A stretch of 64,000 bases of DNA from Rebecca billardiae RCC1528 (GCA_965240325.2 OZ251240.1:806001-870000); one strand, 5' to 3'. Counted from the stretch's first letter, positions 2,296-64,000 are shown. Numbers and translations are program-made. The notes: generated from the sequence alone by a model not told the origin.

Positions 2296-2945
2296 GCAGT
2301 CGCGCTGCTGCGTATGTTCTATACATCTACTTACAGTATCTGTGGTGCTTGAGGAGTCTGGAACTATAGCTATCCCTCTAAGTATCCCACCCGTAAGTAC
2401 ACATACGAGAATGGGTATAGGCACACCGCACTACGCGCTTCTCCTATTGACGATGACAAAAATCACATTTATTCTGACATGAGAATTCAATATTCCATGG
2501 GATGGAGGCATGGTAACCTCAGAAAAATGAGCATGGTTACCACCACCGACAGTCGAATAAATATTCCCTGAAACAAAATGTGATTTTGTTTGCATATGGA
2601 TATTTTTCAATAGCCACTATACTAGCAGAAAGTGATGTAAGTATGTAACTACTGACTTGGACACCGGTCCCCAGACGGCGCTCCCCCCAAATTCCAAAAG
2701 GCGTTGGTAACCTGAGCGAAATTCAACCAGGTTACCACTGGTTACAGCCATTTTAAAAATGTGTTTAAATTTATCCGGTCGACGCTGTCAACTTCAATCA
2801 TCTAAACGCCCAATGAATTGTTTTTCGAACATTGAGGGTAATCCTCGCGAGTATTATTTATAATTTCAAATACTGTGTTAACACACTTAACAAAAGTGTT
2901 AACAAAGTATCGGAGGCTTCCGTGTCTGCGACCGCCCGGTCGCCG

Positions 2946-4832
2946 ATGAGTAGGGTCGAAGCTGGGGGAGTGTGTCAATGGCAAGGCATATGCAGCCTGT
3001 TGCCCTGTCGCAAGCCTGTCCCTGTCGTGAGTCCCCACCGACACCGTGCAGCAGCCGACGCGGGAGCAGCTGCTATCCGGGCGGGTGGTGATGAAGCGAT
3101 TTCTCGCGCGTTTCGGCGCGAGCGGCGAGCCCACGCCTACTTTGAGATGCTCATGGCCACGGACGCTTCCGCGGCGGTCGCGCTCCTCCGGCGCAGGTCG
3201 GGGCGTGGCGACGCGCGTGCGACGTTCCTTCTGGCGCAGCGGGCTGAGGTTGGCGACGGCATCGTACAGGACGAGCGAGAAGCCTTTCGCCTGTACACGC
3301 TCGCCGCCGAGCGCGGCTTGGCCGATGCGCAGGCGAAGATGGGCAACATCTGCGTGGCAGGCAAGCTTGGTCAGCCCGTGGACCTCGAGACAGCCACGCG
3401 CTGGTTCCGGCTGGCGGCCGAGCAGGGCTATGCTATAGCGCAGGGCAATCTGGGCCAGTGCCACGCGCACGGCAAGGGTGTGCGGCAGGACTGGGGCGAG
3501 GCACTGCGTTGGTTCCGGCTGGCAGCCGAGCAGGGCCATGCTCCAGCGCAGTGCAATCTGGGCGATTGCTACGCGCGTGGCGAGGGCGTGCAGGAGGATT
3601 GGGGCGAGGCCGTGCGCTGGTACCGGCTGGCGGCCGAGCAGGGCGTTGCTGCAGCGCAGGGCAACCTGGGCTGGTGCTACGCGCACGGCAAGGGTGTGCA
3701 GCAGGATCTGGACGGGTCTGTGCGCTGGTACCGTCTGGCGGCTGAGCAGGGCAATGCTGAGGCGCAGTGCATTGTGGGCGTGTACTACGCGCAAGGCGAG
3801 GGCGTGCAGCAGGACTCGGGCGAGGCAGTGCGCTGGTTCCGGCTGGCAGCCGAGCAGGGTGACTCAGCTGCGCAGTGCAATCTGGGCGGGTGCTACGCTC
3901 GTGGCGAGGGTGTGCAGCAGGATTGGGGCGAGGCAGTGCGCTGGCACTGGCTGGCGGCCGAGCAGGGCCATGCAGACGCGCAGTGCAACCTGGGCGTGTG
4001 CTACTTGCAGGACGAGGGTGGGCAGCAGGATATGGGCGAGGCAGCGCGCTGGTTCCGGCTGGCGGCCGAGCAGGGCATTGCTGAGGCGCAGTACCATCTG
4101 GGCCTGTGCTACGGGCAAGGCAATGGTGTGCAGCAGAATTGGGGCGAGGCTGTGCGCTGGATCCGGCTGGCGGCCGAGCAGGGCCATACTGAAGCGCAGG
4201 GCCATCTGGGCGCTCGCTACGCGCGTAGCGAGGGTGTGCAGCAGGATTGGGCCGAGGCAGCGCGCTGGTACCGGCTGGCGGCCGAGCAGGGCCATGCTGC
4301 TCCAGCGCAGTACGAACTGGGCGTGTGCTACGCGCAAGGCAAGGGTGTGCCGCAGGATTGGGGCGAGGCAGCGCGCTGGCTCCGGCTGGCGGCCGAGCAG
4401 AGCCATGCTCAAGCGCAGCTTGGTCTGGGCCTGTGCTACGCGCACGGAGAGGGTGTGCAGCAGGATATGGGCGAGGCAGCGCGCTGGTACCGCCTGGCTG
4501 CTGATGGTGGGTGCGCACGTGCACACATCATGCTGGGACAGCTGACGCTGGCGGGTGCGGAAGTGGAGCGTGACGTGGAGGAAGGCGCACGGCTGCTGTG
4601 CCGTGGCCAAGAGCTCGATCCCGATTGCAGAGATGCAGTGTGTAAGGTGCTGGCTGAGGCAGCTGGAGAGCGTGTGGTGGTCTCCCAGTGCTGCATCACC
4701 TGCGGACGGACAGGCAGTGGTCTGAAGAAGTGCGAGCGGTGCCACGTGGCGGTTTTCTGCTCGCGCGAGCACCTGCGCAGCTCGTGGAAGGTGCACAAGC
4801 CCCACTGCAACGCGTGGTGCGGCGCACCTTAG
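2946..4832 (+). CDS. Sel1-like repeat protein (~13 SLRs) with C-terminal MYND-type zinc finger; intronless; start uncertain
   Basis: 36-aa repeats AQxxLGxCYxxGxGVxQDxxEAxRWxRLAAEQG (108-bp DNA units); C-terminus CITC...KKCERCHVAVFCSREHLRSSWKVHKPHC. Confidence 0.88.
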   Translation: MSRVEAGGVCQWQGICSLLPCRKPVPVVSPHRHRAAADAGAAAIRAGGDEAISRAFRRERRAHAYFEMLMATDASAAVALLRRRSGRGDARATFLLAQRAEVGDGIVQDEREAFRLYTLAAERGLADAQAKMGNICVAGKLGQPVDLETATRWFRLAAEQGYAIAQGNLGQCHAHGKGVRQDWGEALRWFRLAAEQGHAPAQCNLGDCYARGEGVQEDWGEAVRWYRLAAEQGVAAAQGNLGWCYAHGKGVQQDLDGSVRWYRLAAEQGNAEAQCIVGVYYAQGEGVQQDSGEAVRWFRLAAEQGDSAAQCNLGGCYARGEGVQQDWGEAVRWHWLAAEQGHADAQCNLGVCYLQDEGGQQDMGEAARWFRLAAEQGIAEAQYHLGLCYGQGNGVQQNWGEAVRWIRLAAEQGHTEAQGHLGARYARSEGVQQDWAEAARWYRLAAEQGHAAPAQYELGVCYAQGKGVPQDWGEAARWLRLAAEQSHAQAQLGLGLCYAHGEGVQQDMGEAARWYRLAADGGCARAHIMLGQLTLAGAEVERDVEEGARLLCRGQELDPDCRDAVCKVLAEAAGERVVVSQCCITCGRTGSGLKKCERCHVAVFCSREHLRSSWKVHKPHCNAWCGAP

Positions 4833-10942: not shown

Positions 10943-11295
10943 TCACGCGCCTGCACCGTACGGGCGATACGTGCTCGTGTCGCCGCCTTCGGACGCGTCT
11001 TGGTCGAGCTCCATCGCCTCGCCACCGCGCGCAGCCGCGCCTGCTGGGAAGAGCGCGTGCGCCAGCCTGTCGCACAGGCCGTGCACGGCCTGGGTCGCGC
11101 GCGCCTCGTGCGCAGCCGCGTCAAGCGCGGCGCCGGCGTCGCATGCGCGCCCCACCGCCGGGTCCAGCGGGAGCTTGCCGAGGAACGGCACGGCAAACTC
11201 GGCGGCCATGCGCTCGGGGCCGCGCAGGGCCGGGCTCGGCTCCGTGGCACCCGCGTGGCCGTTGCTCGTCGCCATCCCGGCCGCATCGGCGCCAT

Positions 11296-11335
<40 letters not shown>

Positions 11336-12268
11336 GCCCTGCCCGGCGCCCGACGGGAAGATTTCAATCTCGATCGCCCCCTCCTCGAGCAGGCCGGGGT
11401 CGGCGGCGTGGAGCGCAGCCAGGAGACGCGGGGTGAGGTCGTGCCCGGCGCGGTCGACGCAGCGCGCGCTCGCGAGCGGCTGCGCGCACGGCGCCATGTT
11501 CTCGACCACGCCCAGCACCTGCAGCGCCGTTTTCTTGCAGAAATTCAATTCCTTGCGCACGTCCGCCATCGACGCCTCCTGTGGCGTGGTGACGACGACG
11601 GCGCCGTCGCGCGGGCCGAGCGCGCGCTTGAGGTACTGCACAGCGGAGATGTGCTCGTCTGACGTGCCTGGCGGCGTGTCGATTAGCAGCACGTCCAGCT
11701 CGCCCCACTCCACGTCGGTCAGAAATTGCTTGATCAGACCGTTCTTCCGAGGCCCGCGCCAGATCACCGCATCGTCGGCGTCCGGCAGGAGGAAGCCGAT
11801 GCTCATGACGCCGAGCTCGCCGTCCGCCTCGTCGTCGGCCGCCACCGCCGCCGCCTCACCGCCGCCCTCGCCGCCCGCCGCGGGCACAGGCACCCACACC
11901 GGAGACCAGCCGCTGCCCGAGGAATGCACCGCCTCGCCGCGCACGCCGAGCATCAGCGGTACGCTCGGGCCGCAGATGTCGATGTCGAGGAGGCCGACGC
12001 GGAGCCCGCGGCGGGCGAGGCCAAATGCAAGTTGCGACGCCACCGTGCTCTTCCCCACGCCGCCCTTGCCGGAGAGCACGAGCACCTTGCGCCGCACGCA
12101 CTCGAGCTGCTTCGCCACCTCCGCGATCGCCGGGTCCTCCTCGCGCGCGGCGCCCGAGGCGCACACCTTCTGGTTGGGGCAGCCCTCGCACGCGCTCGCC
12201 TTGCCGGCCTGCTCCGACTGCGGCCCGACGCAGTCCTCCGGCTGCGGGTGCTCCAGCGGCGTGCTCAT
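10943..12268 (-). CDS. NBP35: Cytosolic Fe-S cluster assembly factor NBP35/NUBP1 (Mrp/MinD P-loop ATPase)
   Basis: N-terminal C-x13-CxxC-x5-C ([25 protein letters not shown]), [58 protein letters not shown]. Confidence 0.95.
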
Positions 12269-12436
12269 CGCGCGGGAAGTCAGGCACAGGGGCGGGAGTG
12301 TGCGGCGTGGCGGTCGTGAACGAGGTCCAAGTGGCCCGCGTGAGCGCGTCCGGTTCACCCGCGCGGGGCCGCTCGCCACAGCTCAAAGCTGGTCTGCTGG
12401 TCGGCGTTCACTCCCGGCCCGGGCGGCATTGCGGCC

Positions 12437-28829: not shown

Positions 28830-29261
28830 ATCTGGTGCTTAGTCCCGAAAAGGCTGAAAAAGTCTGAAAGAGTGCAGATTATTTTTCGCCAGATTTTTTG
28901 CGGTCCGGGCGCACTTTTGCGCACTTCGGCCCGAGCGAGCGAGTCGCGCTTCAGTACACTGCAGATAAGTTCTATCAAGGGGAGAGTCGTTCTATAGATT
29001 CTTCGCCGACCTGCAGGGCGAGTGAGCTGGAGGGCGGGTGCGCAGTCTGTACCATACAGTTTACTATGTCTTAAAGTGCGCACACTTGGTTAATTAAGGC
29101 GTGAGTGACGCCATCCATCACACTGCACAAAGACGCCGCCACAAAAAGACCGGCGCAGGCAGGTGATGGGCCGCCCGGCGCAGCCTACCATCTTTCCGAA
29201 CATCAACATTCAGGCATCAAGGCCCATGCCCACCAGCGTGACGACGGAGCTGCGGCATGCC

Positions 29262-30850
29262 ATGGGTGTCGCGCTCGTGACGATAAGCCTGCTGGCGTCG
29301 GGCGCGGCTGCCGGCTCTTTCGAGAACTACCCCCTGTACACGATGTGCATCGCCAACCCGTCTGCGTGCACAAGCCTCACTGTGCGTGTCCCGGCTGTCG
29401 CGCGTGCGACGAGGCGCCCACGCCCATCGCGACGGCGCGGCCAACCCTGGCGCATGGCGCGCGAGCCGGCGAGCGGCCATGCCGCACATGCATGCGACGG
29501 CAATCGGCATGCGCTGCCGCGAGGAGTGATGACGCGCTCGCCGCACGGTCGCCTGGCCCACCATGTGCGACTCGCGACGCGCGCCGTCGGCACGTGCGCA
29601 GGTGGACACGTCAGCCCTCACGGGCACGATTCCAACTTACATCGGGACGCTGTTCAACCTTAATGTTCTGTACGCGCACGGCGCGCCGCGCGTGGGGGCA
29701 GCCAGCCAGCCAGCCAGCCAGTGAGCACGCAGCGGCGATAGGACGCGCACCCGTGCCAGACTGCACGTGTCCTACTGTCCTCTGCCGACCAACCAACCGG
29801 AGGATGGATGGCAGTGGGCAGCCGCTGAGAAGCCAGACGGCCACAGCAGCGCTCGCGCCGTGCTCGTCTGCACGCAGTCGTGCGGTCGGCTGGCAGTAGG
29901 CAGCTGCGACGAATGGGAAGCGTGCGCTGACGCGGCTTGCCAGTCCTTACCTGCCCACTGTGTTCGCACGCCACGCGCTGTGCAGGCTGATGCAGTTTAA
30001 CTCGTTGTCTGGCACCCTTCCAAGTGAGTTCGGCCTCTTGACGGCTATGACGAGCATGTACGCGCGACCGCCCTTGGCGCGACCATCACCGAGAGCCTGC
30101 CAGGGGTACTACTGGTGGTTGTGCTACATATTCTCGCCAGCCACGCGCGCGCACATCGCAGCGCTCGCCCTGCCGAGCCTGACTGACCGCCCACTCACGT
30201 GCTATGCGCTTGTGCACGCCACCACGCGCTGCGCAGGTCTTTGAACTTCAACTCGTTCTCTGGCACCCTTCCAAGTGAGATCGGCCTCATGACGGCTCTG
30301 TCGTTCATGTACGCGCGACCATCACCGAGCGCGGGCCAGGGGTGCTGCTGGTGGTGGTGCTACATATTCTAATATATTCTTGCCAGCCACGCAAGCGCGC
30401 AGCGAGGCGCTCACCACCCTGCCGAGCCTGACCGCCCACTCGTGTGCTGTGCGTTTGTGCACGCCACCACGCGCTGCGCAGGGATGTGTCCACCAACTCG
30501 TTCTCTGGCACCCTTCCAAGTGAGATCGGCCTCATGACGGCTCTGGGTCTAAATCAAATGTACGCGCGGCCGGAGGGATAGGCGGGGCCGAGAGGCGGCT
30601 GCGCTCGTGCATGAGCCTGTCCTTGCGTGCCCCTGGCGATCCGACGTCGCGTCACGCTTGCCATGCCCGCCGCTGACGCTGCCACGTGTTCGCCTGTGCC
30701 TTCACCCCGTCACCGCGCATTGGTACCATCGACACTTGCTTGCAGGGATGTCTCCTCCACGCAGATGTGGCACCCGGGTGGCACGCACGGCTATCCTGCC
30801 GTCACGCCGGCGACGCTCCCAGACGCACCGTCGCCGCCGCCCTCACCCAC

Positions 30851-30892
<42 letters not shown>

Positions 30893-31250
30893 TTCGCCTC
30901 CTCCCTCGCCGCCGCCGCCGCCGCCACCGTCGCCACCACCGTCGCCGCCGCCCCTGCCGCCACCCGACTACTGCGTGGATCGTCCCCTCTTCTGCTTTGG
31001 GGTGTGTGCGCGACTGCCCTGCGTGCGCTCTGCTGGCCCCGCCCTGCCTGTGCGCCATGCGCCCAGCGTTCCAGGCGCGTGCTTGCACTGCGCGCCCGTT
31101 GACGCGCGCCTTCGCCCCCTGCTCCGTCCCACTGCCGCGCCCACCGACGTGCAGGTTGGGCTGGCCGCGCGCGATGTCGTGTCGACCACGTTCACTCGAC
31201 TTCTGTGCAAGACCACCTTCCTGCTGGGCGGCGCAGCGTGCGCACCTTGA
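29262..31250 (+). CDS. Small secreted LRR protein with one-LRR-per-exon structure and Ser/Pro stalk; exons 29262-29381, 29602-29669, 29986-30057, 30237-30308, 30482-30559, 30746-31250 (a further 3' intron is possible)
   Basis: Signal peptide MGVALVTISLLASGAAA; Cys cap CIANPSACTSL; LRRs LTGTIPTYIG, NSLSGTLPSEFG and NSFSGTLPSEIG x2; all introns GT-AG; then SPPP repeats. Confidence 0.8.
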
Positions 31251-33531: not shown

Positions 33532-35777
33532 TCAGGCGGTGAGCGACGGGTCAGCGTCGTCCGCCTCGTGAGCAGCGCCCCGTGCCCGACTCACACCGGC
33601 ATCGCCGAGCCTCACGCTCACCTCCGAGCTGGTCGTCTCGCCAGAGTCGCGCGGCCCTCGGCCGTGCCCGGAGGCGGCCGTCGCGGCGCTCGCCCTGCGC
33701 GGCGTGGCCGCCGTGCTCGTCGCGCTCTCGCGCGCCTCGATGCGCTCGAGCGCCGCGACCACCTCCCCCAGGCTCCCCTCGACCGCCGCCATCGACTCCT
33801 CGAGTCGTACGTGCCGCCGCGTCATGCGCATGCGCCAGCGCTCGTCCGCGTCCGCCTCGGCGAGGTTCGCGCCCATGTACTCGCGCGCCTCCGCCTCGAG
33901 CTGGGACATCCACTCCTCCAGCAGCGCCGACGGCCGGCTCGTCGAGCCCACCCCGCCTGCGCCCGGCTCGAGGCGCCCGCGCTTGGGGCCGGCGCGCGGC
34001 GAGGTCTCAACAGACTCGCGCCGTCGCTCCGGCTCGGCCGACGCGGGCGCGCCGCTCGCGGCGCGCGGCGCGCGCAGGCGGCGGCGGCATCGCCACAGCG
34101 ACACCGCTACCCGCGAGGGCAGGCCGAGCAGGTTGAACGGCGGCGGCGCGGGCGGGAGCCGCGCCGCCGACTGGATCAGCTTCGCCTTGACAAACTTGGC
34201 GTGCACCTGCGCAGGCGCCACCGGCCGGACCCGGCAAGCGCGCGGATGGGCGGAGAGCGGATGACGGTTTGATGGTAACGGTTTGTAACGGTTTGTTGAA
34301 GGCGAGGATTCGGCCGCAGCACAGACAGAGGCGTGAACACACACGCCGGGGACGAACGGCGCAGCGGTCGAGTGCGCCGTGGCGGGGATGGGGGGCCGCG
34401 GGAGGCGGCGGCTGGCGTGAGCGAGCGTGGGCGCGCGGCTGCAGGCGAGCGGCGCGCTCGCATGCAGAGGGGGCGCGTGACCGCAGGGCCAGGCGGTGCG
34501 CAGCGCGCGGCGCGGCGCGCGAGCGCCGGGGTGGGCGCGCGAGAGCGCGGGGGGCGCACATCGAGGTGGTCGTGGATCGAGTCGAAGGTCTGTGCGCGGC
34601 GCCCCGCGCGGGCGGAAGGGGTTGGCAGCATCGGGCGGGTCGCGTCAGTATGGTGACGGCGTGCGCGTCTGACCTCGGCCATCATGGCCGCCGCCAGCAG
34701 GCAGCATGCCCCGTGCGCGTCGCCGTGCGCCGCATGCGCGCGGCACTGCGCGCGGGCGTGGCGTCGCGCCGAGGCCGCACCTTGGCCATGGCGGCGATGA
34801 TCACGTTGAGCATGAGCACCACCATCACGATGGCGAACGTGACCATCAGCACCCACGACAGCCAGCCGACAGGCGACTGTCGCAGGCAGTCGAGCCGTGT
34901 GTCCGCCATGCCGAAGACGACTTCGATCAGAACGACCAGCGCGCTCTCCGCCGAGTGGCCGTAGTCCTCGTGCAGCTGCGGCCGCGCGGGGCGCGGGCGC
35001 GGGGGGCGGTGGGGGCGGCGCGGACGGGAGGGGGGAAGGCTGAGGGGCGCGCGGCACGGCGCGTGCCAATCGCAGCGCGCCGCCATTGCTTCGCGCGCGC
35101 GCGGCTGGCCCACACGCACCTCCTGCTGCGCCTCTGGGTCGCCGAGTGTGGAGCAGCCCTCGCCCATCTGCGTCGAGGCAATCTCCTTGAGCAGCACGTG
35201 CAGCGCGACCGCAAATGCGCACAGCAGCGGGAGCATGATGCTGCGCACGACGCGCGCGCGCACGCGCGCACGCACGCATTCGCGCAGGCCGTCCGGCGTG
35301 CGTGCGCGCGTGAGGCGCGCCGGCTGCTGGCTGGCTCACGCGCGCGGGGCGGGCGCCGTTCGCACCCGACGATCCTCCCCACGTCCTGCAGCATGCGGAA
35401 CACCATCAGCGTGAACGGCCCGAGCTCCGTCGAGAGGTACAGCGCGCGCATCAGCCGGATGGTGAGCCCCAGCACCGCCACGCTCATCACTTGCGAGGAC
35501 GCGGGCGCGTCTTGCGCGAGAGAGTCGTCGCCGGGCGGGGCGAGCCTGCGCGCAAAGCGGCGATGGAGGGCGGGGCGCGGGCAAGGGCGCGGCGGTGAGC
35601 GCGCGCGGGGCGCGCGGTGAGACGTCGGCCGCGCGCGATGCGCGTGTGCGCCCGTGCGCGGCTGCAAGCGCCGCCCTGCGGCCGAGGCCGCGCGCCGCGC
35701 TCGCGCCCGGCCGCGCGCATCGGCGGCGCGCGCGCAGCCCGGCCGCGCGCGGGGCCTCCAGCGCCCACAGCCGCGCG

Positions 35778-35814
<37 letters not shown>

Positions 35815-38800
35815 GCGCGCGCGCGCCTGAGCAGCAGCGCCACCGCGGCGAGCAGCAGCCCGCCGATCTCGAAGAGGTTGAACTCGTCTGACACGTAGCG
35901 TCGCAGCGCGGTCAGAGGGTTGCGCCCGTCGCGCATCAGCTCCTCGAGCTCGACGAGGATGGCGCCGGCGACGCACGCGAGCGCGGCGGAGGTCCACAGC
36001 CGCTCCTCGGTCAGCTCGATGGGCAGCAGCCCGGCGCCGCCCGGCGCGCCGTCCGGCGCGCCGGTGCGGTCGGCCTGTGCGGGCGGGCGCAGCGCGCCGC
36101 GCCTCGCGTCGTCGTCGCCGTCGTCGTCCGCGGCCGCGCGCGCGCGCTCCACCATCGCCATCGCCGCCGTGTCGTCCACGGGCGGCAGCGTCGCGCAGAG
36201 CCAGACGAGCACGCAGCCCATCAGCCAGTGCAGCGTCAGCTTCACGATCGGCGCGTCCACCAGCAGCAGCGACGTCGAGTACGCGAGCGGCCTCGAGCCG
36301 CGAGAGTCGTACTTGTTTTTTACCCGCCCCGATTTGAACTGCACGCGGAGCGCGCTTGAGAGCAGCGGAGAGGCGTCGGGGGCGAGGACGAGGACGGCGG
36401 CGAGGAGCGGCTGCGCGGCGAGCACCGCGAGCGGCGACGCGAGCCACACCGCCCACGCGCGCCGCTGCGTCGAGAACTCCGACTCCCGCAGCGCCGACGC
36501 CATGCTGAGCGCCTGCCCCGCCGCCTCGCGCACTGAGCCGCCCAGCGCGCGGATGTGCGCGCGCTGCACGGGCGGGTACGACAGCAGGATCGTGCACCCG
36601 CCCTCCGCGGCGCGCTCGAGGAGCGGCCACTGCCCTTCCCAGCCCGCCGGCTGCCGCGCGCTCGGCGCGAGCGAGAGGGCCGCGCCCGTGCCGCGGCTCG
36701 GCGCAGAGCCGCCGCCGCCGCCGCTCGCGCCGCCGCCGCCGCCCGCGCCGCCGCCGCCGCTCGCGGCCGCGGCCGCGCTGAGCGCGAGCTCGGCGGAGCA
36801 GATGCCGAGCTCGACGAGGCGCGCGGCGTGCGCGCACTCGTCGGCCGCGCTCTGCCCCCACTCCTCGCGCCGCCTCCGCGCCAGCGCCGTGCACGCGATC
36901 GACCCCTCCAGCGCGAACTGCGCCGTGCCCGTGCACGCGACCGAGTAAGCCACCAGCCGTGCGGCCGACGCAAGTTGGTCGTCGCCGTCGAGGCCACACA
37001 GCCAGTGCGCCGCGTCGACGCCTGCGGCCTTGACGGCCTCGCTCGCGCCCTCGCCCACGCCGGCGGAGAGCAGCCCGCGCGTGCTCCCGCCCGCGCCGCC
37101 CGCCGCGCTGCTCGCCGCGTACGAGTCGAGCAGGAAGTCGAACATCGACTCGTCGTAGTCGTCGACCGAGGAGGCGCGCGCCGCGAGCACGAGCCGCTTG
37201 TGGTAGGCTGCCACGTCAAACGGCGCCTCCCACGAGAGGAAGATGGCGGCGCCCTGCCTGCGGACGGCGAGCTCGGAGGCGGCGGGCGGGTGGGCGGGCG
37301 CCGCCGTCGCCGCGCCGCGGGCGCCGGGCTCATCGGCCGCGCCGACGGTGGGCGCGCGGTGCAGCGGCGGGGGCAGAGGCGGCGCGGGCGGCGGCGGTGG
37401 CGGCGCGTTGTCTGGCGGCGGCGCGGCGGCGGCGACCATCCTGGGCGAAGGCACCGACCCGGCCGCGGGCTGGCTGGCGGCGGCGGGCGTGGGCAAGCGC
37501 GGCTCGTCGGCGGCGGCCTCCTCCCCGCCGTCCTCCTCCTCGCTCTGCCGCAGCAGCAGCAGCGCGGCGCGCATCGCCCGCGCAAAGCCGGGCGGGTTCC
37601 CCTCAAGGTTGAGCGCAGTCAGAGCGCGGCCGCCGCCGCTCGCAAGCGCGGCGGCTATCTCAGCAGCCGAGCGCTCGCGCAGCGCGTTGCCCTCGGCGCG
37701 GAGCACGCGGAGGGTGGCGTTGGCCCGCAGCGCGCGGCCGAGCGCCACGCCGCTCGCGTCGGTCAGCTTCGTCCCCGCCAGCACCAGCGTGCGCAGCGTC
37801 TGGTTGGCCGCGAGCGCGCGCGCGAGCGCGCCGCCCGCGCGGTCGGTCAAGTTGGCCTCTCCGAGGGCGAGTGTTCGCAACCCGCAGCCGTCGGCCATCA
37901 GCGCGGCGGCGAGCTCCTCGCCCGTCGCGTCGGAGAGCTCGTTGCTCGACAGCGCGAGCGAGACCACCGGCGGCCGCCCGCTCAGCGCGCGCCCCATCAC
38001 CGCGCGCGCCAGCGCCACGCCGGACGCGTCGGTGAGCTCGTTGTCGTCGAGATCGAGCGAGATCAACGTCTGTGAGCAAGTGAGCGCGCGCGCGAGCTCC
38101 ACGCCCGTCGCGTCCGTGAGCCCGTTGCGCTCGAGGCGGAGCTCGGCGAGCGGCGGGCCCGTGGGCGGCGGGGCCGCCGCCGCCGCGCCGCCGCCGCCGT
38201 CGGGCCCGCCGCCGTCCGCCTCGGCCGGCTGCTGCGGCTGCGGCGGCTGCGCGTGCGCGTGCGCGTGCGCGGCATGCGCGTGCGCGGGCGACGCGTGCGA
38301 CGCGTGCGCGGGCGCGCGCCCGTTGGGAGAGCGCGGCTGGTTCAGCGCGCCGCCGCGCTGGGGCGAGCGCGGGCGCTTGGGCCCGCCGTCGGCGGGGCCG
38401 TAGTGCCCGCTGCGCGCGCGCCCGCCAAAGTGCGCGCTCCCGTACGAGCTGCGCCTGCGCCCCGCCGCCGCCGCGCTGCGCAGCGCCGCGACCGCCGCGG
38501 CAGCGCTCGCCTCGTGCGCGCTCGGCGCGTCGGTCGCGAGCGCGTCGCCGAGCGCGACGCCGCTCACGTCGGAGAGCATGTTGCCGGAGAGGTTGAGCAG
38601 CACGAGCGCGCGGTTCTCGCGCAGCGCCGTCGCCAGCTCCACGCCCGTGCGGTCCGACAGCGCGTTGTTCGGCACGTGCAGCTCGGCGAGCGCAGAGCCG
38701 CCGGAGGCGCCGAGGGCCTCGGCGAGCGCCGCGCCGCTCGCGTCCGCCAAGTTGTTCGCGCCGAGGTGCAGCACGCGCAGCCGCGTGGCGGCGGGCAGCG

Positions 38801-39680
38801 CGCCGGCGAGCACGCGGCCGGCGGCGTCGCCCATCCGGTTGCCCCCGAGCAGCAGCCGCTCGAGCCGGCACTCCGCCCGCTGCAGCGCCGACGCCAACTC
38901 CTCCGCTGTGCGAGGGCCGGCGTTGTTGTCGCTCAGGTCGAGCTCGGTGAGAGCGCCGTTGGCCGCGAGCGCGCGCGCGATCTCGGCGCAGCCGCCGTCG
39001 CGCAGCGCGTTGCCGCCGAGGCAGAGCGACTCGAGCGCGAGGTTCCGCGCGAGCGCCGCGCCGAAGTGCGCGCCCGCGCCGTCCGCCACGTGCGCGCTCG
39101 CCAGACGGAACTCGCGCAGCGTCGAGTTGCGCTCGAGCGAGCGCGCGAGCGCGCGCACGGCGCGGGAGGAGAACGTGTTGCCGCTGAGCTCGAGGCTCGT
39201 GAGCGTGGCGTTGTGCTCGAGCACCTCCGCCAGCGCGTTCGCCGTGCCGTCGCCCAGGCCGTTGCGCGCCGCGCTGAACGTGCGCAGCGAGCGCGAGTGC
39301 TGGATGGCCGCCGCGAGCGTCACGCCCGCGCGGTCGGTCAGGGCGTTGTCCGCGACGGAGAGCGTGTGCAGCACGGTGCTCGCGTGGAGCAGCTCAGCGA
39401 GCGCGATCCCGTACGCGTCGGAGAGCCGCCTGCGCTCGAGATCGAGCACGGTCGCCTCGCGCAGCACGCTCGCCTCCACGCCGTCCCCGAGCCGGCGCGC
39501 GAGCCGCTCGAGCGAGACGGGCTTGGCGCTCGAGGGCGAGAGCAGGAGCTGCGGCGGGCGCGAGACGCGCTTGGGGCTCGGCGACCCGGACGAGGGCGAC
39601 GCGCCACCCTCCGCGCTTGCGTGCGCGTCGCTCGCCGGAGCGACGCCATCGAAGCTCACCGCGCCCGCCGTGACCGCCAT
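33532..39680 (-). CDS. TRP-like cation channel with N-terminal RI-type LRRs; exons 39680-35827, 35545-35366, 35240-35120, 34975-34781, 34589-34560, 34206-33532
   Basis: 28-aa LRRs (LxxLxLxxNxLxDxxGxxLAxAL). Channel core: DEFNLFE (S3), LTIRLMRALYLSTELGPFTLMVFRMLQDV (S4-S5 linker), pore helix, LMLNVIIAAMAKTFD (S6) and APPPFNLL (TRP box 2-like); C-terminal coiled coil. First intron is GC-AG. Confidence 0.82.
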
Positions 39681-39883
39681 GCGCTTCTGGATGGGCGGCC
39701 GGCCTTGGCCCAAACTCCCCAAAGTAATACGACGTCTGTATGTACTACAGTACCTAGTCGTAGCAGGCGATGGGCCCGCCCAACGGGCGCCTGGACGAAA
39801 CCAGAACCGCACATGGCCGTGGGGTGGGCGCCACCACCGGCCAATCCGATGGACGAAAAATTACAAACCTCAACCTCGTGCCC

Positions 39884-56000: not shown

Positions 56001-59000
56001 GCGGTGGCGACGGTGGCGGCGGGCTCGGCGGCGGTGGTGACGGCGGCGGGCTGGGCGGTGGCGATGGCGGCGGCGATGGTGGTGGGCTGGGCGGTGGCGA
56101 CGGTGGCGGCGGGCTCGGCGGCGGTGGTGACGGCGGCGGGCTGGGCGGTGGCGATGGCGGCGGCGATGGTGGTGGGCTGGGCGGTGGCGACGGTGGCGGC
56201 GGGCTCGGCGGCGGTGGTGACGGCGGCGGGCTGGGCGGTGGCGATGGCGGCGGCGATGGTGGTGGGCTGGGCGGTGGCGACGGTGGCGGCGGGCTCGGCG
56301 GCGGTGGTGACGGCGGCGGGCTGGGCGGTGGCGATGGCGGCGGCGATGGTGGTGGGCTGGGCGGTGGCGACGGTGGCGGCGGGCTCGGCGGCGGTGGTGA
56401 CGGCGGCGGGCTGGGCGGTGGCGATGGCGGCGGCGATGGTGGTGGGCTGGGCGGTGGCGACGGTGGCGGCGGGCTCGGCGGCGGTGGTGACGGCGGCGGG
56501 CTGGGCGGTGGCGATGGCGGCGGCGATGGTGGTGGGCTGGGCGGTGGCGACGGTGGCGGCGGGCTCGGCGGCGGTGGTGACGGCGGCGGGCTGGGCGGTG
56601 GCGATGGCGGCGGCGATGGTGGTGGGCTGGGCGGTGGCGACGGTGGCGGCGGGCTCGGCGGCGGTGGTGACGGCGGCGGGCTGGGCGGTGGCGATGGCGG
56701 CGGCGATGGTGGTGGGCTGGGCGGTGGCGACGGTGGCGGCGGGCTCGGCGGCGGTGGTGACGGCGGCGGGCTGGGCGGTGGCGATGGCGGCGGCGATGGT
56801 GGTGGGCTGGGCGGTGGCGACGGTGGCGGCGGGCTCGGCGGCGGTGGTGTCGGCGGCGGGCTGGGCGGTGGCGATGGCGGCGGCGATGGTGGTGGGCTGG
56901 GCGGTGGCGACGGTGGCGGCGGGCCCGGCGGCGGTGGTGACGGCGGCGGGCTGGGCGGTGGCGATGGCGGCGGCGATGGTGGCGGGCTGGGCGGTGGCGA
57001 CGGTGGCGGCGGGCTCGGCGGCGGTGGTGTCGGCGGCGGGCTGGGCGGTGGCGATGGCGGCGGCGATGGTGGTGGGCTGGGCGGTGGAGACGGTGGCGGT
57101 GGGCGCGGTGGCGGTGGTGACGGCGGCGGGCTGGGCGGCGGAGATGGCGGCGGCGATGGTGGTGGGCTGGGCGGTGTCGACGGTGGCGGCGGGCTCGGCG
57201 GCGGTGATGACGGCGGCGGGCTGGGCGGTGGTGATGGTGGCGGCGATGGTGGTGGGCTGGGCGGTGGCGACGGTGACGAGCAATTGGCAAGAGTGCTGAG
57301 GTCCGGGTCGAACTTGCTGTTGCTCCCGAAAGGCGTGAGTGCGCAGAACTCGCTGCCGTCGTACCAACTGAAATGCAGTGAGGGGGAGGTGGCGGGTCGG
57401 GCGGGGGACGTGTTGGCCATCCATCAACCCTGTCCGCGTGTGGGGACCGAAGATGGCGCCACCGTGCGGCAGACAGACTGCGAGGCTCCCTAGGTGGGCA
57501 CGCCACCTACGCCACCTCGAGCAGGCGAGCAGCCAGGCAGCAGGCACAACAACACAGCTGGCTGGCGCGCGTAGGCGCGAGTGCGTAGGCGCACGTACAA
57601 TGCGTTGCTGCTGCCCAAAGAGGTCAGCTGCAAAACCTCTGTTGGCATGGCGCCACCGAGCGAGTTTAAGTGAAGGTATCTGTTCCCGCGTGTGGTGGGA
57701 GTAGCGTCGGGTGGCAACACCAATACCACCAATGCGCGTCAGCTTCCACGCGGTGTGCGCGCTTGCGCCGCACGAGGGCGCTGAGAGTGATGGCATCTCT
57801 GGGGGCGGTTGTTTGACGCTCGCTGCTGCGCACACATCGACACGAGGCTCGTCATTGCGCCCACTTCCGAAGGGATGCTCCCTGTGAGCGAGTTGGAGTA
57901 GAGAAACCTGTTCCCGCGTGTGGTGGGAGTAGCGTCGGGTGGCAACACCAATACCATCAATGCGCGTCAGCTTCCACGCGGTGTGCGCGCTTGCGCCACA
58001 CGAGGGCGCTGAGAGTGATGGCATCTCTGGGAGCGGTTGTTTGACGCTCGCTTCTGCGCACACATCGACGTGAGGCTCGTCATTGCGCCGACTACAGAGG
58101 GGATGTTCCCTGTGAGCAAGTTGGAGTAGACGGACCTGTTCACTCGTGTGGTGGGAGTAGCGCCGGGCAGCAACACCAAGATGCACGTCAGCTTCCATGC
58201 GGTGTGCTTGCGCCACACGTGGGTGGGGGAGAGTGAAGCGATCTCTGGGGGCGGGTGGGGCTAGTTGCTGCGCGCACAGGTACCGCAGGCTCGTCAGTGC
58301 GCCCACTTCAGAAGGGATGCTCCCTGTGAGCGAGTTGGAGTGGAGGTACCTGTTTACGCGTGTGGTGGGAGTAGCGTCGGGCGGCAACACCAATATGCAC
58401 GTCAGCTTCCATGCGGTGTGCATGCGCCACACGTGGATGGGGGAGAGTGAAGCGATCTCTGGAGGCGGGTGGGGCTAGTTGCTGCGCACACATGAACAGC
58501 AAGCTCGTCCTTGCGCCCACTTCAGAGGGGATGCTCCCTGTGAGCGAGTTGGAGGAAGATTGCCTGTTTACGCGTGTGGTGGGAGTAGCGTCGGGCAGCA
58601 ACGCCAAGATGCACGTCAGCTTCCATGTGGTGTGCATGCGCCACGCGTGGGTGGGGGAGAGTGAAGCGATCTCTGGGGGGGCGGGTGGGGCTAGTTGCTG
58701 CGCACACAAATCAGTGAGGCTCGTCATTGCGCCCACTTCAGAAGGGATGCTCCCTGTGAGCGAGTTGGAGGAGACGGACCTGTTCACGCGTGTGGTGGGA
58801 GTAGCGTCGGGTGGCAACACCAATATGCACGTCAGCTTCCATGCGGTGTGCATGCGCCACGCGTGGGTGGGGGAGAGTGAGGCGATCCAGGGGGGCGGGT
58901 GGGGCTAGTTGCTGCGCGCACAGGAACCGCAAGCTCGTCAATGCGCCCACTTCAGACGGGAGGCTGCCTGTGAGCAAGTTGTATTGGACAGCCCTGTTCA

Positions 59001-62000
59001 CGCGTGTGGTGGGAGTAGCGTCGGGCAGCAACACCAATACTATCAATGCAACGCCAGCTTCCAGCGCATGCACCACGAGGGGGGGGGGGGGGGGGGGGGT
59101 CTCGGGGGCGGTTGGTGCTCGCTGCTGCGCGCACAGGTTCGTCAAGCTCGTCAGTGCGCCCACTTCAAAGGGGAGGCTGCCTGTGAGCGAGTTGAGTTCA
59201 AGAGTCCTGTTCACGCGTGTGGTGGGAGTAGCGCCGGGCAGCAACACCAAGATGCACGTCAGCTTCCATGCGGTGTGCATGCGCCACGCGTGGGTGGGGG
59301 AGAGTGAGGCGATCCAGGGGGGCGTGTGGGGCTAGTTGCTGCGCGCACAGGTACCGCAAGCCCGTCAATGCGCCCACTTCGGAGGGGAGGCTGCCTGTGA
59401 GCGAGTTGGATTGGACAGCCCTGTTCACGCGTGTGGTGGGAGTAGCGTCGGGCAGCAACACCAATATGCACGTCAGCTTCCATGCGGTGTGCATGCGCCA
59501 CGCGTGGGTGGGGGGCCGGAGAGTGCTGACATCTCTGGGAGCGATTGGTGCTGCTCACTGCTGCGCGTACATCCATGTGAGGCTCGTCATTGCACCAACT
59601 TCGGAGGGGAGGCTGCCTGTGAGCGAGTTGGAGTAGAGGTACCTGTTCACGCGTGTGGTGGGAGTAGCGCCGGGCAGCCGTCAGCTTCAACGCGGTGTGC
59701 ATGCGCCACACGTGGGTGGGGGGCAGTGCAATGCCATCTCTGGGGGCGGTTGGTGCTCGCTGCTGTACGCACAATACCTCCAAGCCCGTCATTGTGCCCA
59801 CTTCAGAAGGGATGCTGCCTGTGAGCGAGTTGGAGTAGAGGTACCTGTTCATGCGTGTGGTGGGAGTAGCGTCGGGCAGCAACACCAATATGCACGTCAG
59901 CTTGAATGTGGTGTGCATGCGCCACGCGTGGGTGGGGGAGAGTGAGGCGATCTCTAGGGGTGGGTGGGGCTAGTTGCTGCGCACACAGTATCTCCAAGCT
60001 CGCCACCGCGCCCACTTCAGAGGGGAGGCTCCCTGTGAGCAAGTTGGAGGAGACGGACCTGTTCACGCGTGTGGTGGGAGTAGCGTCGGGCAGCAACACC
60101 AATATGCACGTCAGATTCCACACTGTGTGTGTGCGTGCGCCACGCGTGGGTGGGGGAGAGTGAAGCGATCTCTGGGGGCGGGTGGAGCTCGCTGCTGTGC
60201 GCACAATTGCCGCAAGCTCGTCATCGCGCCCACTGCAGGAGGGATGCTCCCTGTGAGCGAGTTGGATACAGATTGCCTGTTTACGTGTGTGGTGGGAGTA
60301 GCGTCGGGCAGCAACACCAATATGCACGTCAGCTTCCATGCGGTGTGCATGCGCCACACGTGGGTGGGGGAGAGTGACGCGATCTCTGGGGGCGGGTGGG
60401 GCTAGTTGCTGCGCGCACAGGTACTGCAAGCTCGTCATTGCGCCCACTTCAGAGGGGAGGCTGCCTGCGAGCGAGTTGTGTTGGACAGCCCTGTTCACGC
60501 GTGTGGTGGGAGTAGCGTCGGGCAGCACCAATAATACCAATGCACGTCAGCTTCCATGCAGTGTGTGTGCTTGCGCCACACGTGGGTGGGGGAGAGTGAA
60601 GCGATCTCTAGGGGTGGTTGTTTGACGCTCGCCGCTGCGCGCACATCATCGTGAGGCTTGCCATTGCGCCCACTTCCGAAGGGATGCTCCCTGTGAGAGA
60701 GTTCCCGTCGAGAAACCTGTCACCAGGCAGCAGCAGGAGGGGGAAATGCCATCAGTCAAGGCAGAGGTGGCCAGATCCACAGGTGGCGCGCAAACTGCGT
60801 ATGCAGCGCAGAGGACTGGGGAGCGCATCGTACATTGACGGCACATTCGCCATGTAGCCGATCTCGGTGGGTATCGTGCCTGTCTTGCCAACAGAGCGGT
60901 ATGAGCTGCACTCGGCCGTATCCAAGCGGGCAGCGCACAAAGCATGATGACGCGCAGGGCAGGCCAGCCAGAGCAGGCGGTTTGTAAGCGCAACGACGCT
61001 GCGCGCGCGCGCGCGCGTGGAGGGGAAGAGGTTGCTCTGCAGTGCTGCGGCAGCCACGCACATGCTGTTTGTCATGCTGTTGCACGCCGGCTCGTTGAAT
61101 GTGCCCGAGTCTGGGAAGCACTGGGGGTAGTCCCCCAGCATCGCATCGCGCAGGCTGGATGACGTGGCGGTCTCGACCTGGGCGAAAAGCGCATATGAGA
61201 TGAGCGTTGCTTTCACGAGCGGCACGTGGCTCGTGCGCGAGGTCGGCCGCCGAGAAAGGCCGGGCGAGGAGACACGCCGACACTGGACCACGTGATGGTA
61301 GAAGAAGGTCAGCAGAAGCCATGCGACGAGCACGCACAGGCAACCAACAATGACCAGCACGTGCCGGGGTGAGAGAGACGTCTGCACCTTGATCATCGCA
61401 CCGACGTGAACAGGCATGCCCACGAGCTCGTGCGACCACGGCGCGTTGATCTTGTGCTCCGTCACCATCGTGTCGGCTGGCGTGCCCGTGAGCGCGTGCG
61501 GCGGCGTCGCGTCGGTCTCGTGCTGCATCATGAACGTGTCGGCCGGCGTGCCCGTGAGCGCGTGCGGCGGCGTCGTGTCGGTCTTGTGCTCCATCACCAT
61601 CGTGTCGGCCGGCATGCCCGTGAGCGCGTGCGGCGGCGGCGCGTTGGTGTCGCGCTGCATCATGAACGTGTCGGCCGGCATGCCCGTGAGCGCGTGCGGC
61701 GGCGGCGCGTTGGTCTCGTGCTGCATCATGAACGTGTCGGCCGGCATGCCCGTGAGCGCGTGCGGCGGCGGCGCGTTGGTCTCGTGCTGCATCATGAACG
61801 TGTCGGCCGGCGTGCCCGTGAGCGCGTGCGGCGGCGGCGCGTTGGTCTCGTGCTGCATCATGAGCATGTCGGCCGGCATGCCCGTGAGCGCGTGCGGCGG
61901 CGGCGCGTTGGTCTTGTGCTCCGTCACCAGCGTGTCGGCCGGCATGCCCGTGAGCGCGTGCGGCAGCGGCGCGTCGGTGTTGCGCTGCATCATGAACGTG

Positions 62001-64000
62001 TCGGCGGGCATGCCCGTGAGCGCGTGCGGCGTCGGCGCGTCGGTCTCGTGCTGCATCATGAACGTGTCGGCCGGCATGCCCGTGAGCGCGTGCGGCGGCG
62101 GCGCGTCGGTCTTATGCTCCGTCACCAGCGTGTCGGCCGGCATGCCCGTGAGCGCGTGCGGCGGCGGCGCGTTGGTGTCGCGCTGCATCATGAACGTGTC
62201 GGCCGGCATGCCCGTGAGCGCGTGCGGCGGCGGCGCGTTGGTCTCGTGCTGCATCATGAACGTGTCGGCCGGCATGCCCGTGAGCGCGTGCGGCGGCGGC
62301 GCGTTGGTCTCGTGCTGCATCATGAACGTGTCGGCCGGCGTGCCCGTGAGCGCGTGCGGCGGCGGCGCGTCGGTCTTACGCTCCGTCACCAGCGTGTCGG
62401 CGGGCATGCCCGTGAGCGCGTGCGGCAGCGGCGCGTCGGTGTTGCGCTGCATCATGAACGTGTCGGCGGGCATGCCCGTGAGCGCGTGCGGCGGCGGCGC
62501 GTTGGTCTCGTGCTGCATCATGAGCATGTCGGCCGGCATGCCCGTGAGCGCGTGCGGCGGCGGCGCGTTGGTGTCGCGCTGCATCATGAACGTGTCGGCC
62601 GGCATGCCCGTGAGCGCGTGCGGCGGCGGCGCGTCGGTCTCGTGCTGCATCATGAACGTGTCGGCCGGCATGCCCGTGAGCGCGTGCGGCGGCGGCGCGT
62701 TGGTCTCGTGCTGCATCATGAACGTGTCGGCCGGCGTGCCCGTGAGCGCGTGCGGCGGCGGCGCGTTGGTGTCGCGCTGCATCATGAACGTGTCGGCCGG
62801 CATGCCCGTGAGCGCGTGCGGTGGCGGCGCGTCGGTCTCGTGCTGCATCATGAACGTGTCGGCCGGCATGCCCGTGAGCGCGTGCGGCGGCGGCGCGTTG
62901 GTCTCGTGCTGCATCATGAACGTGTCGGCCGGCGTGCCCGTGAGCGCGTGCGGCGGCGGCGCGTCGGTCTTACGCTCCGTCACCAGCGTGTCGGCCGGCA
63001 TGCCCGTGAGCGCGTGCGGCGGCGGCGCGTTGGTCTCGCGCTGCATCATGAACGTGTCGGCCGGCATGCCCGTGAGCGCGTGCGGCGGCGGCGCGTTGGT
63101 CTCGTGCTGCATCATGAACGTGTCGGCCGGCATGCCCGTGAGCGCGTGCGGCGGCGGCGCGTCGGTCTTATGCTCAGTCACCAGCATGTCGGCCGGCATG
63201 CCCGTGAGCGCGTGCGGCGGCGGCGCGTTGGTCTCGTGCTGCATCATGAACGAGTCGGCCGGCGTGCCCGTGAGCGCGTGCGGCGGCGGCGCGTTGGTCT
63301 CGTGCTGCATCATGAGCATGTCGGCCGGCGTGCCCGTGAGCGCGTGCGGCGGCGGCGCGTCGGTCTCGTGCTGCATCATGAACGTGTCGGCCGGCATGCC
63401 CGTGAGCGCGTGCGGTGGGGTCGCGTCGGTCTTGTGCTGCATCATGAACGTGTCGGCCGGCATGCCCGTGAGCGCGTGCGGCGGCGGCGCGTTGGTCTTG
63501 TGCTCCGTCACCAGCGTGTCGGCGGGCATGCCCGTGAGCGCGTGCGGCAGCGGCGCGTCGGTGTTGCGCTGCATCATGAACGTGTCGGCGGGCATGCCCG
63601 TGAGCGCGTGCGGCGTCGGCGCGTCGGTCTCGTGCTGCATCATGAACGTGTCGGCCGGCATGCCCGTGAGCGCGTGCGGCAGCGGCGCGTCGGTCTTATG
63701 CTCCGTCACCAGCGTGTCGGCCGGCATGCCCGTGAGCGCGTGCGGCGGCGGCGCGTCGGTCTTACGCTCCGTCACCAGCGTGTCGGCGGGCATGCCCGTG
63801 AGCGCGTGCGGCAGCGGCGCGTCGGTGTTGCGCTGCATCATGAACGTGTCGGCGGGCATGCCCGTGAGCGCGTGCGGCGGCGGCGCGTTGGTCTCGTGCT
63901 GCATCATGAGCATGTCGGCCGGCATGCCCGTGAGCGCGTGCGGCGGCGGCGCGTCGGTCTTACGCTCCGTCACCAGCGTGTCGGCGGGCATGCCCGTGAG
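45796..64000 (-). CDS. Giant polycystin-1-like receptor (>5000 aa; 5' end may lie beyond the window): 22-aa repeats - hydrophobic segments - Cys cap - 16 LRR exons - Ser/Pro stalk - IPT/TIG-like - REJ - EGF-like - GPS - ~5 TM
   Basis: Frame-consistent GT-AG splicing: >=64000-61062, 60905-60834, 14 x 72-nt exons, 57679-57599, 57367-48227, 48110-48016, 47876-45796. Spliced GPS CHFWNETSALWSAEGC...CVCDHLTDF; REJ-like NRSPFGGVLAVSP...FALSASGWTDD..DLPLRYQF. Confidence 0.82.
54540..57290 (-). repeat. Ser-Pro3/4 (extensin/HRGP-like) coding tract with a 90-bp (30-aa) tandem unit, perfect over ~55680-56850
   Basis: The sequence repeats with an exact 90-bp period. Confidence 0.95.
57599..60905 (-). repeat. 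LRR exon-intron cassette array: 72-nt exons at 60645-60716, 60419-60490, 60205-60276, 59987-60058, 59773-59844, 59571-59642, 59349-59420, 59135-59206, 58922-58993, 58708-58779, 58492-58563, 58278-58349, 58064-58135, 57836-57907; capped by 60834-60905 (72 nt) and 57599-57679 (81 nt)
   Basis: Each exon lies between ...CAG and GT(G/A)..., is phase 2-2, and encodes xxxxNxLxGx(I/L)PxxVGxxxxLxx. The 14 introns of 130-156 nt are mutually homologous. Confidence 0.93.
61430..64000 (-). repeat. 66-bp (22-aa) coding minisatellite, ~39 units, Met/His/Pro-rich
   Basis: MPADT(FMMQ/LVTE)(H/R)xT(N/D)APPPHALTG units in one uninterrupted frame. Confidence 0.95.

Follow-up and report, generated by a model that had tools for sequence, protein, structure and literature searches.

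Exons that each encode a single leucine-rich repeat (LRR) and behave as cassettes under diversifying pressure have so far been described mainly from cytosolic ROCO proteins of brown algae (PMC3341825, PMC11378527). Zambounis et al. (2012) showed that ROCO genes of Ectocarpus carry 72-nt single-LRR exons that are shuffled and bear signs of positive selection on the repeat's concave face, and raised the idea of a form of adaptive immunity (PMC3341825). Teng et al. (2024) reported that each LRR exon is 72 bp long and of phase 2, and that splice variants contain different sets of LRR exons (PMC11378527). A second point of reference is polycystin-1, in which N-terminal LRRs lie ahead of the REJ and GPS domains (PMC9672506). 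Here we describe a gene from Rebecca billardiae RCC1528, a probable haptophyte, that places an array of 14 single-LRR exon cassettes at the head of a candidate REJ/GPS receptor. The gene was found in a 64-kb stretch of DNA (GCA_965240325.2 OZ251240.1:806001-870000), hereafter the window, whose G+C content is 69%; all coordinates count from its first nucleotide.

A tandem array of single-LRR exons

The cassette array lies on the minus strand at positions 57680-60716 and comprises 14 head-to-tail units of ~214 bp, each composed of a 72-nt exon and a homologous intron of 130-156 nt. Tandem Repeats Finder (TRF) reports a 214-bp period in 14.0 copies with 81% matches (57658-60703), and a minus-strand scan for the pattern AG, 72 nt, GT recovers 14 exons of exactly this length. 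They start at positions 60716, 60490, 60276, 60058, 59844, 59642 and 59420 in the first half of the array and at 59206, 58993, 58779, 58563, 58349, 58135 and 57907 in the second half, each ending at its start minus 71. Every cassette exon has G as its first base and AT, CT or TT as its last two, and all are free of stop codons in the frame in which the first base closes a codon, which corresponds to intron phase 2. The codon formed at the junction specifies Met or Leu in 14 of 14 cassettes. Both the unit structure and these junction properties had been put forward in a sequence-only reading of the locus; TRF, the pattern scan and the intron alignment agree on the former, and the latter are seen throughout the array.

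The 14 cassette introns all have GT..AG ends and can be aligned with one another over their full length. A 20-nt word within them is found 14 times when one mismatch is allowed, compared with no occurrence in 100 shuffled sequences. Throughout the cassette introns (57680-60644), the final ~45 nt are almost invariant. A higher-order repeat was considered and rejected: the 432-bp period found by TRF (80% matches) is no better than that of 214 bp, and the matrix of intron distances has no alternation.

Each cassette exon encodes one 24-residue LRR of the plant type. Together with the flanking LRR exons, the array yields 16 consecutive units with a 24-residue period and the consensus LxxLxLxxNxLxGxIPxxxGx, as in plant-specific-type extracellular LRRs, and unit residues N5, L7, G9, P12, V15 and G16 are invariant across the 14 cassettes. 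When searched singly against Pfam, LRR exons match LRR_1 at E = 0.11-0.22, which is under the cut-off, as expected because the query is just 23 residues long.

The array is bounded by first and last LRR exons that are distinct from the cassettes and by caps containing two Cys each, in keeping with the earlier description. The first LRR exon (60834-60905, minus strand) is 72 nt long, divergent, and starts with C. The last (57599-57679, minus strand) is 81 nt long, likewise divergent, and has the donor TT/GTACGT, the slash marking the exon end. As had been noted, it starts with A, and the codon at its actual junction specifies Ile.

Divergence among the cassettes

The copies differ more in their exons than in their introns, with a mean pairwise diversity of 0.24 in the former and 0.13 in the latter. 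Non-synonymous (pN) and synonymous (pS) divergence was obtained from Nei-Gojobori pairwise counts between cassettes, with no site model. Across the repeat core (codons 5-21), pN is 0.094 and pS is 0.237, a ratio of 0.40, whereas the junction-flanking codons give 0.534 and 0.385, a ratio of 1.39. This distribution of changes points to purifying selection on the repeat core and not on the codons beside the junctions.

The change is focused further on the five x positions of the LxxLxLxxN segment (unit residues 22, 23, 1, 3 and 4), where pN reaches 0.61 and pS 0.41; outside these residues the values are 0.12 and 0.25. An excess of non-synonymous change at the xxLxLxx sites had been named as something the recognition hypothesis should produce, and the pairwise counts bear this out. 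The most variable unit residues are 23, 1, 3 and 22, all four among the five solvent-facing concave positions, and by simple counting the chance of such a coincidence is 5/10,626. The LRR binding strand straddles the splice junction: one exon contributes its final two codons, the following exon its first four, and the split codon lies between them. The variation lies beside the exon ends because the strand is encoded across this junction.

Intron p-distance over the array is 0.123. Among the seven most homogenized cassettes the introns differ by 0.067, compared with a concave pN of 0.55. Cassettes 13 and 14, which form the youngest pair, differ at 4 of 156 aligned sites in the intron and at 11 of 72 in the exon (Fisher p = 7e-4). 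The low intron divergence and the near-invariant intron ends may reflect conversion tracts, splicing constraint or some other intron function.

Mosaic structure of the cassettes

The variable residues at the two ends of each exon appear to have been exchanged among cassettes. The 5ʹ variable blocks fall into ~6 classes, each common to two or three cassettes, and are freely combined with the 3ʹ blocks. Mantel tests detect no association between the 5ʹ block and any of the 3ʹ block, the core or either neighbouring intron; for the 3ʹ block, only a weak correlation with the downstream intron was found (r = 0.30, p ~0.02). The four-gamete test is failed by 215 of 496 informative site pairs, giving a minimum (Rm) of at least 14 exchange events. 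The most divergent cassettes are terminal (1, 13 and 14) and the interior ones are most alike, which is as expected for arrays that evolve by unequal crossover and conversion. The mosaicism, the number of exchanges and the variable concave residues together favour the proposal, already made in the sequence-only reading, of a modular LRR head diversified by unequal crossover or gene conversion.

Architecture of the receptor

All 21 proposed exons join into an open frame of 12,813 nt and 4,270 codons with its sole stop at the end. In the model, which runs along the minus strand, a provisional first exon (61396-61062) is followed by the first LRR exon (60905-60834), the 14 cassettes, the last LRR exon (57679-57599), a giant exon (57367-48227), a middle GPS exon (48110-48016) and the last exon (47876-45796).

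The provisional first exon begins at the nearest in-frame ATG, at 61396, which we take provisionally as the start codon, and ends in the phase-2 donor AT/GTGCGT. It encodes a hydrophobic signal or anchor segment (model residues 13-31) and then the N-terminal cap with its two Cys (61177-61062). With two further Cys in the C-terminal cap, these features are those of a capped LRR domain that would enter the secretory pathway. Immediately upstream, TRF finds 39 copies of a 66-bp tandem repeat (61413-64000, minus strand) that is open in the frame of the N-cap exon. The repeat has a G+C content of 0.987 at third codon positions and no stops, in one minus-strand frame only (open reading frame (ORF) 60752-63991). 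Its translation, a 22-residue unit that is MPADTFMMQHETNAPPPHALTG-like, continues without a stop into the N-cap exon. The repeat may be a coding N-terminal extension of 22-residue repeats, possibly cytosolic, ahead of the membrane anchor. Because the frame stays open through the repeat to the edge of the window, the start of the gene may lie outside it.

The giant exon was delineated by translation, Pfam matches and colinearity with P0001, a homologue considered below, and ends with CHFW/GTGCGC. It encodes, in order, the LRR C-terminal cap, a Ser-Pro3 rod, two spacers of ~110 residues, TIG repeats, an REJ domain, a Cys-rich stretch of EGF-like type and the beginning of the GPS motif. The rod extends over ~900 residues, of which 75% are Pro and 21% Ser, and Pro-rich linkers separate the two spacer modules. 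The spacers (54573-52900, minus strand; ORF residues ~960-1080 and ~1305-1430) are two copies of one module that ends with the motif C..A.N[YF]DS.ATF.. followed, after 5-6 residues, by C.Y; the same module occurs at the N-terminus of P0001 and has no Pfam match. Pfam assigns REJ (PF02010) at E = 9.4e-38, covering profile positions 14-452 of 452, and TIG at 1.5e-14.

The GPS motif is spread over three exons (CHFW / N..CVCDHLT / DFAA): the middle exon ends with ..CVCDHLT, and the last exon starts with DFAA directly after the predicted cleavage site and ends with the stop codon. The assembled motif, CHFWN..W..GC..CVCDHLT/DFAA, aligns with the GPS region of P0001 (precomputed PF01825), and the REJ/GPS module of the receptor may be autoproteolytically cleaved. 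After the GPS, the last exon encodes five hydrophobic helices, the third and fourth of which are separated by a loop of ~400 residues; the base is predicted to have a large cytosolic loop. REJ and TIG are the sole Pfam families on the giant exon, and the last exon has none; neither exon matches PLAT or PKD_channel, and a ROC-COR GTPase is likewise absent from the matches. The claim of an REJ/GPS receptor is upheld by the REJ score and by the intron-split GPS motif, whereas its description as polycystin-1-like applies to these two elements and not to the remainder, as the PLAT and channel domains are absent and only ~5 helices follow the GPS.

Relatives of the receptor

Model residues 1794-4258 align at 44% identity, in one high-scoring segment pair, with the homologue P0001, which comes from a Logan assembly and is 2,445 residues long. 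The colinearity of this single segment validates the 3ʹ splice junctions of the model. Relatives of the membrane base are few, with just 22 at E ≤ 0.001 among 1.84 billion representative proteins. In the Protein Atlas, the same region reached a recognition of 1798 (benchmark 2300) and a best feature score of 0.84, short of the lead threshold of 0.9. Three homologous contigs (L001, L002 and L004) are 7-8 kb long and stop short of any head region.

Two further TIG-REJ homologues, P0002 and P0003 (ENA), have N-terminal repeats of ~90 residues with a ..LCY[RK]F.. motif instead of LRRs; a precomputed Pfam GPS is listed for P0002 and not for P0003. To judge from these proteins, the receptor family seems to exchange one head for another while retaining a shared TIG-REJ stalk. 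A metagenome scan with the invariant 20-nt intron word gave no match. The single contig that matched a degenerate pattern for the exon core has no LRR exons and looks prokaryotic, and was set aside as a chance hit.

Origin and maintenance of cassette diversity

The account that we consider probable is that germline unequal crossover and conversion enlarged the LRR head, that selection keeps its ligand face diverse, and that splicing is constitutive. The protein would resemble a receptor on a pole, with, from the outside in, a 16-repeat LRR solenoid, the Ser-Pro3 rod, the TIG and REJ domains, the GPS and a base of five helices. Fully extended, the rod might span ~0.25-0.3 micrometre, and the most likely role of the receptor is that of a sensor or adhesin with long reach, its LRR head being carried on a rigid glycoprotein-type rod. 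In the germline, a single 214-bp unit of exon plus intron would have been expanded into the present head through recurrent unequal crossover, in register, and gene conversion. Through such exchanges the introns would stay alike, as would the structural core of the repeats, while selection would preserve, and probably drive, differences at those x positions of LxxLxLxxN that face the solvent. By default every LRR exon would be spliced into one long domain, and diversity would be evolutionary, arising between repeats, between paralogues and probably between strains, not made within the cell. For the ROCO genes of brown algae, which have this gene design, a like reading is in print (PMC3341825, PMC11378527).

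An unlikely alternative is combinatorial exon skipping, in which the spliceosome omits subsets of cassettes to give many receptor isoforms with different heads. The splice variants of Ectocarpus that differ in their LRR exon sets provide a precedent (PMC11378527), and the unusually high conservation of introns between cassettes would suit a role in splicing control. In addition, all joins are in frame and keep the hydrophobic core residue. The sequence-only reading had drawn attention to these in-frame Met and Leu joins, but they follow automatically from duplicating one symmetric phase-2 exon: any exon-to-exon join is in frame because the copies share that ancestor, and common descent alone explains the property. 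The splice signals also argue against skipping, as donors, acceptors and 3ʹ intron ends are near-identical and consensus-like in all 14 cassettes, with none looking weaker than its neighbours. Introns of 130-156 nt are short, moreover, and short introns favour intron-definition splicing, under which exon skipping is uncommon. No covarying structure emerges from the intron alignment, for which the consensus fold of the 14 introns has 24 pairs with almost no compensatory change (covariation term +0.8) and hence no conserved RNA structure. Complementarity to flanking sequence of the docking/selector kind known from Dscam does not exceed chance either: the best candidate in an inverted-repeat search is 71% complementary over 24 nt with one 8-mer seed. 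A more ambitious form of the idea, in which regulated or stochastic skipping generates a repertoire of LRR heads that varies from cell to cell or with conditions and the conserved introns act as control elements, strikes us as improbable. If it were true, it would amount to a Dscam-like solution in a protist, mounted on a polycystin-type autoproteolytic receptor.

It is also unlikely that the array arose by neutral tandem duplication, such that the junction codons are unconstrained x positions of an older array whose introns were homogenized later by gene conversion. The x positions of LRR proteins vary in general, the pN/pS ratio of ~1.4-1.5 is not clearly greater than 1, and the 5ʹ variants belong to a few shared classes and are not all unique, each of which neutrality would accommodate. 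Nevertheless, conversion tracts that make the flanking introns alike (p = 0.03-0.09) should do the same to the 6-7 codons in between. These codons are instead 5- to 8-fold more divergent, which is hard to explain without selection against homogenization.

Somatic rearrangement within a clone, whether similar to that of variable lymphocyte receptors (VLRs) or of diversity-generating retroelements (DGRs), or targeted hypermutation of the cassettes, is prompted by the analogy of LRR cassettes, by the idea raised for Ectocarpus (PMC3341825) and by the concentration of change in a few codons, but is extremely improbable given that the germline carries a complete, in-frame gene that can be spliced, that the rest of the window has no donor, inverted or inactivated cassette and no template-like repeat, and that many variants are common to several cassettes, which indicates recombination of existing variants and not de novo mutation. 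Orphan cassettes had been envisaged in the earlier reading, but blastn and tblastn searches of the window with one cassette detected none, orphan, inverted or inactivated; the only matches were the 14 array copies and an unrelated LRR gene at 29.6-30.6 kb.

Several points weigh against the preferred account of germline exchange with selection on the ligand face. The pN/pS values above 1 at the variable codons come from few and partly saturated sites in recombining copies that are not independent of one another, and positive selection at these codons is not formally proven. Synonymous divergence in the exon core (0.24) is approximately twice intron divergence (0.12), an excess that would require either homogenization of the introns or constraint on them. 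Constitutive splicing is an assumption of the model. Finally, the ATG at 61396 is a provisional start of the gene.

The occurrence of the cassette design in a predicted extracellular REJ-GPS receptor, in a probable haptophyte and thus in a different major lineage from the brown algae, suggests that the design is older or more easily re-invented than thought. In ecologically important marine algae, this receptor family is a candidate for recognizing viruses, bacteria, grazers or mates. With 14 young copies, and with introns homogeneous enough to act as an internal neutral yardstick, the gene also offers a clean test case for measuring selection on an LRR binding face.

Other genes in the window

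A second, small LRR gene resides on the plus strand at 29258-31000. Its start resembles a signal peptide, and it further has a Cys cap, four LRR exons and a short tail rich in Pro. At least two of these LRR exons are exactly 72 nt long and of phase 2 with homologous introns, and its DNA is unrelated to that of the 14-cassette array. On the minus strand at 35490-39812, a 1,441-residue ORF encodes LRRs of the ribonuclease-inhibitor type (Pfam LRR_6, 4.8e-14); this LRR class differs from that of the receptor head, and the ORF is a single exon without cassettes. The window also contains a single-exon gene for an Fe-S assembly ATPase of the NBP35/NUBP1 type (10946-12379, minus strand), whose best named relative is from Diacronema lutheri (72% identity). 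This relationship places the genome close to the pavlovophyte haptophytes, and the host is probably a pavlovophyte distinct from D. lutheri. A 666-residue ORF (2832-4829, plus strand) has 12 Sel1 repeats (1e-93) and, at its C-terminus, a MYND zinc finger.

Comparison with known systems

Agnathan VLRs and insect Dscam1 resemble the present gene in that a recognition surface is built from interchangeable repeat cassettes. VLR assembly requires an incomplete germline gene, flanking donor cassettes and somatic copy-choice. That set is absent here, given a germline gene that is complete and in frame and a window without additional cassettes. Dscam1 requires clusters of mutually exclusive exons together with docking/selector RNA pairing, a set that was likewise not encountered. 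Nothing VLR-like or Dscam-like was found, and no diversity machinery of an antibody-like kind is evident.

The receptor shares with animal polycystin-1, PKDREJ and sea-urchin REJ proteins its Cys-capped N-terminal LRRs, a large ectodomain, the REJ domain and a GPS with HL^T before the first helix (PMC9672506). It differs from this family in being without PLAT, PKD repeats, C-lectin, WSC and the six-helix channel-like domain, and in having ~5 helices where the family has 11. Polycystin-1 has a couple of LRRs and no cassette array, and the receptor adds an extensin-like rod and TIG domains.

The brown-algal LRR-ROCO genes of Ectocarpus and Saccharina are closest in the design of the array itself. 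They share with it 72-nt phase-2 exons that each encode one 24-residue LRR, arrays of many exons, signals of variation and selection on the concave face, a proposed role in fast-evolving recognition and the idea of isoforms made by splicing. However, the ROCO repeat is a type I motif, whereas the repeat described here is of the extracellular plant type (NxLxGxIPxxxG) with Cys caps. Whereas the chassis of ROCO proteins is a cytosolic ROC-COR GTPase, that of the present gene is predicted to be a secreted-pathway receptor with REJ, GPS and five transmembrane helices (5TM) on a Ser-Pro3 rod. The units of the array follow one another strictly head-to-tail and have short homologous introns, and the intronic, inverted and inactivated LRR exons that mark shuffling in Ectocarpus are absent from the window. 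Lastly, the host is probably a haptophyte and not a stramenopile.

The combination had been thought undescribed, which is correct only in part. LRRs with REJ and GPS are known from polycystin-1 (PMC9672506), and the design of 72-bp phase-2 exons with one LRR per exon, together with its shuffling, diversifying selection and alternative splicing, is already known from brown algae (PMC3341825, PMC11378527). The novelty lies in the lineage, in a repeat of the extracellular plant type, in the combination of a REJ-GPS-5TM chassis with a Ser-Pro3 rod, and in an array that is very clean, young and strictly tandem.

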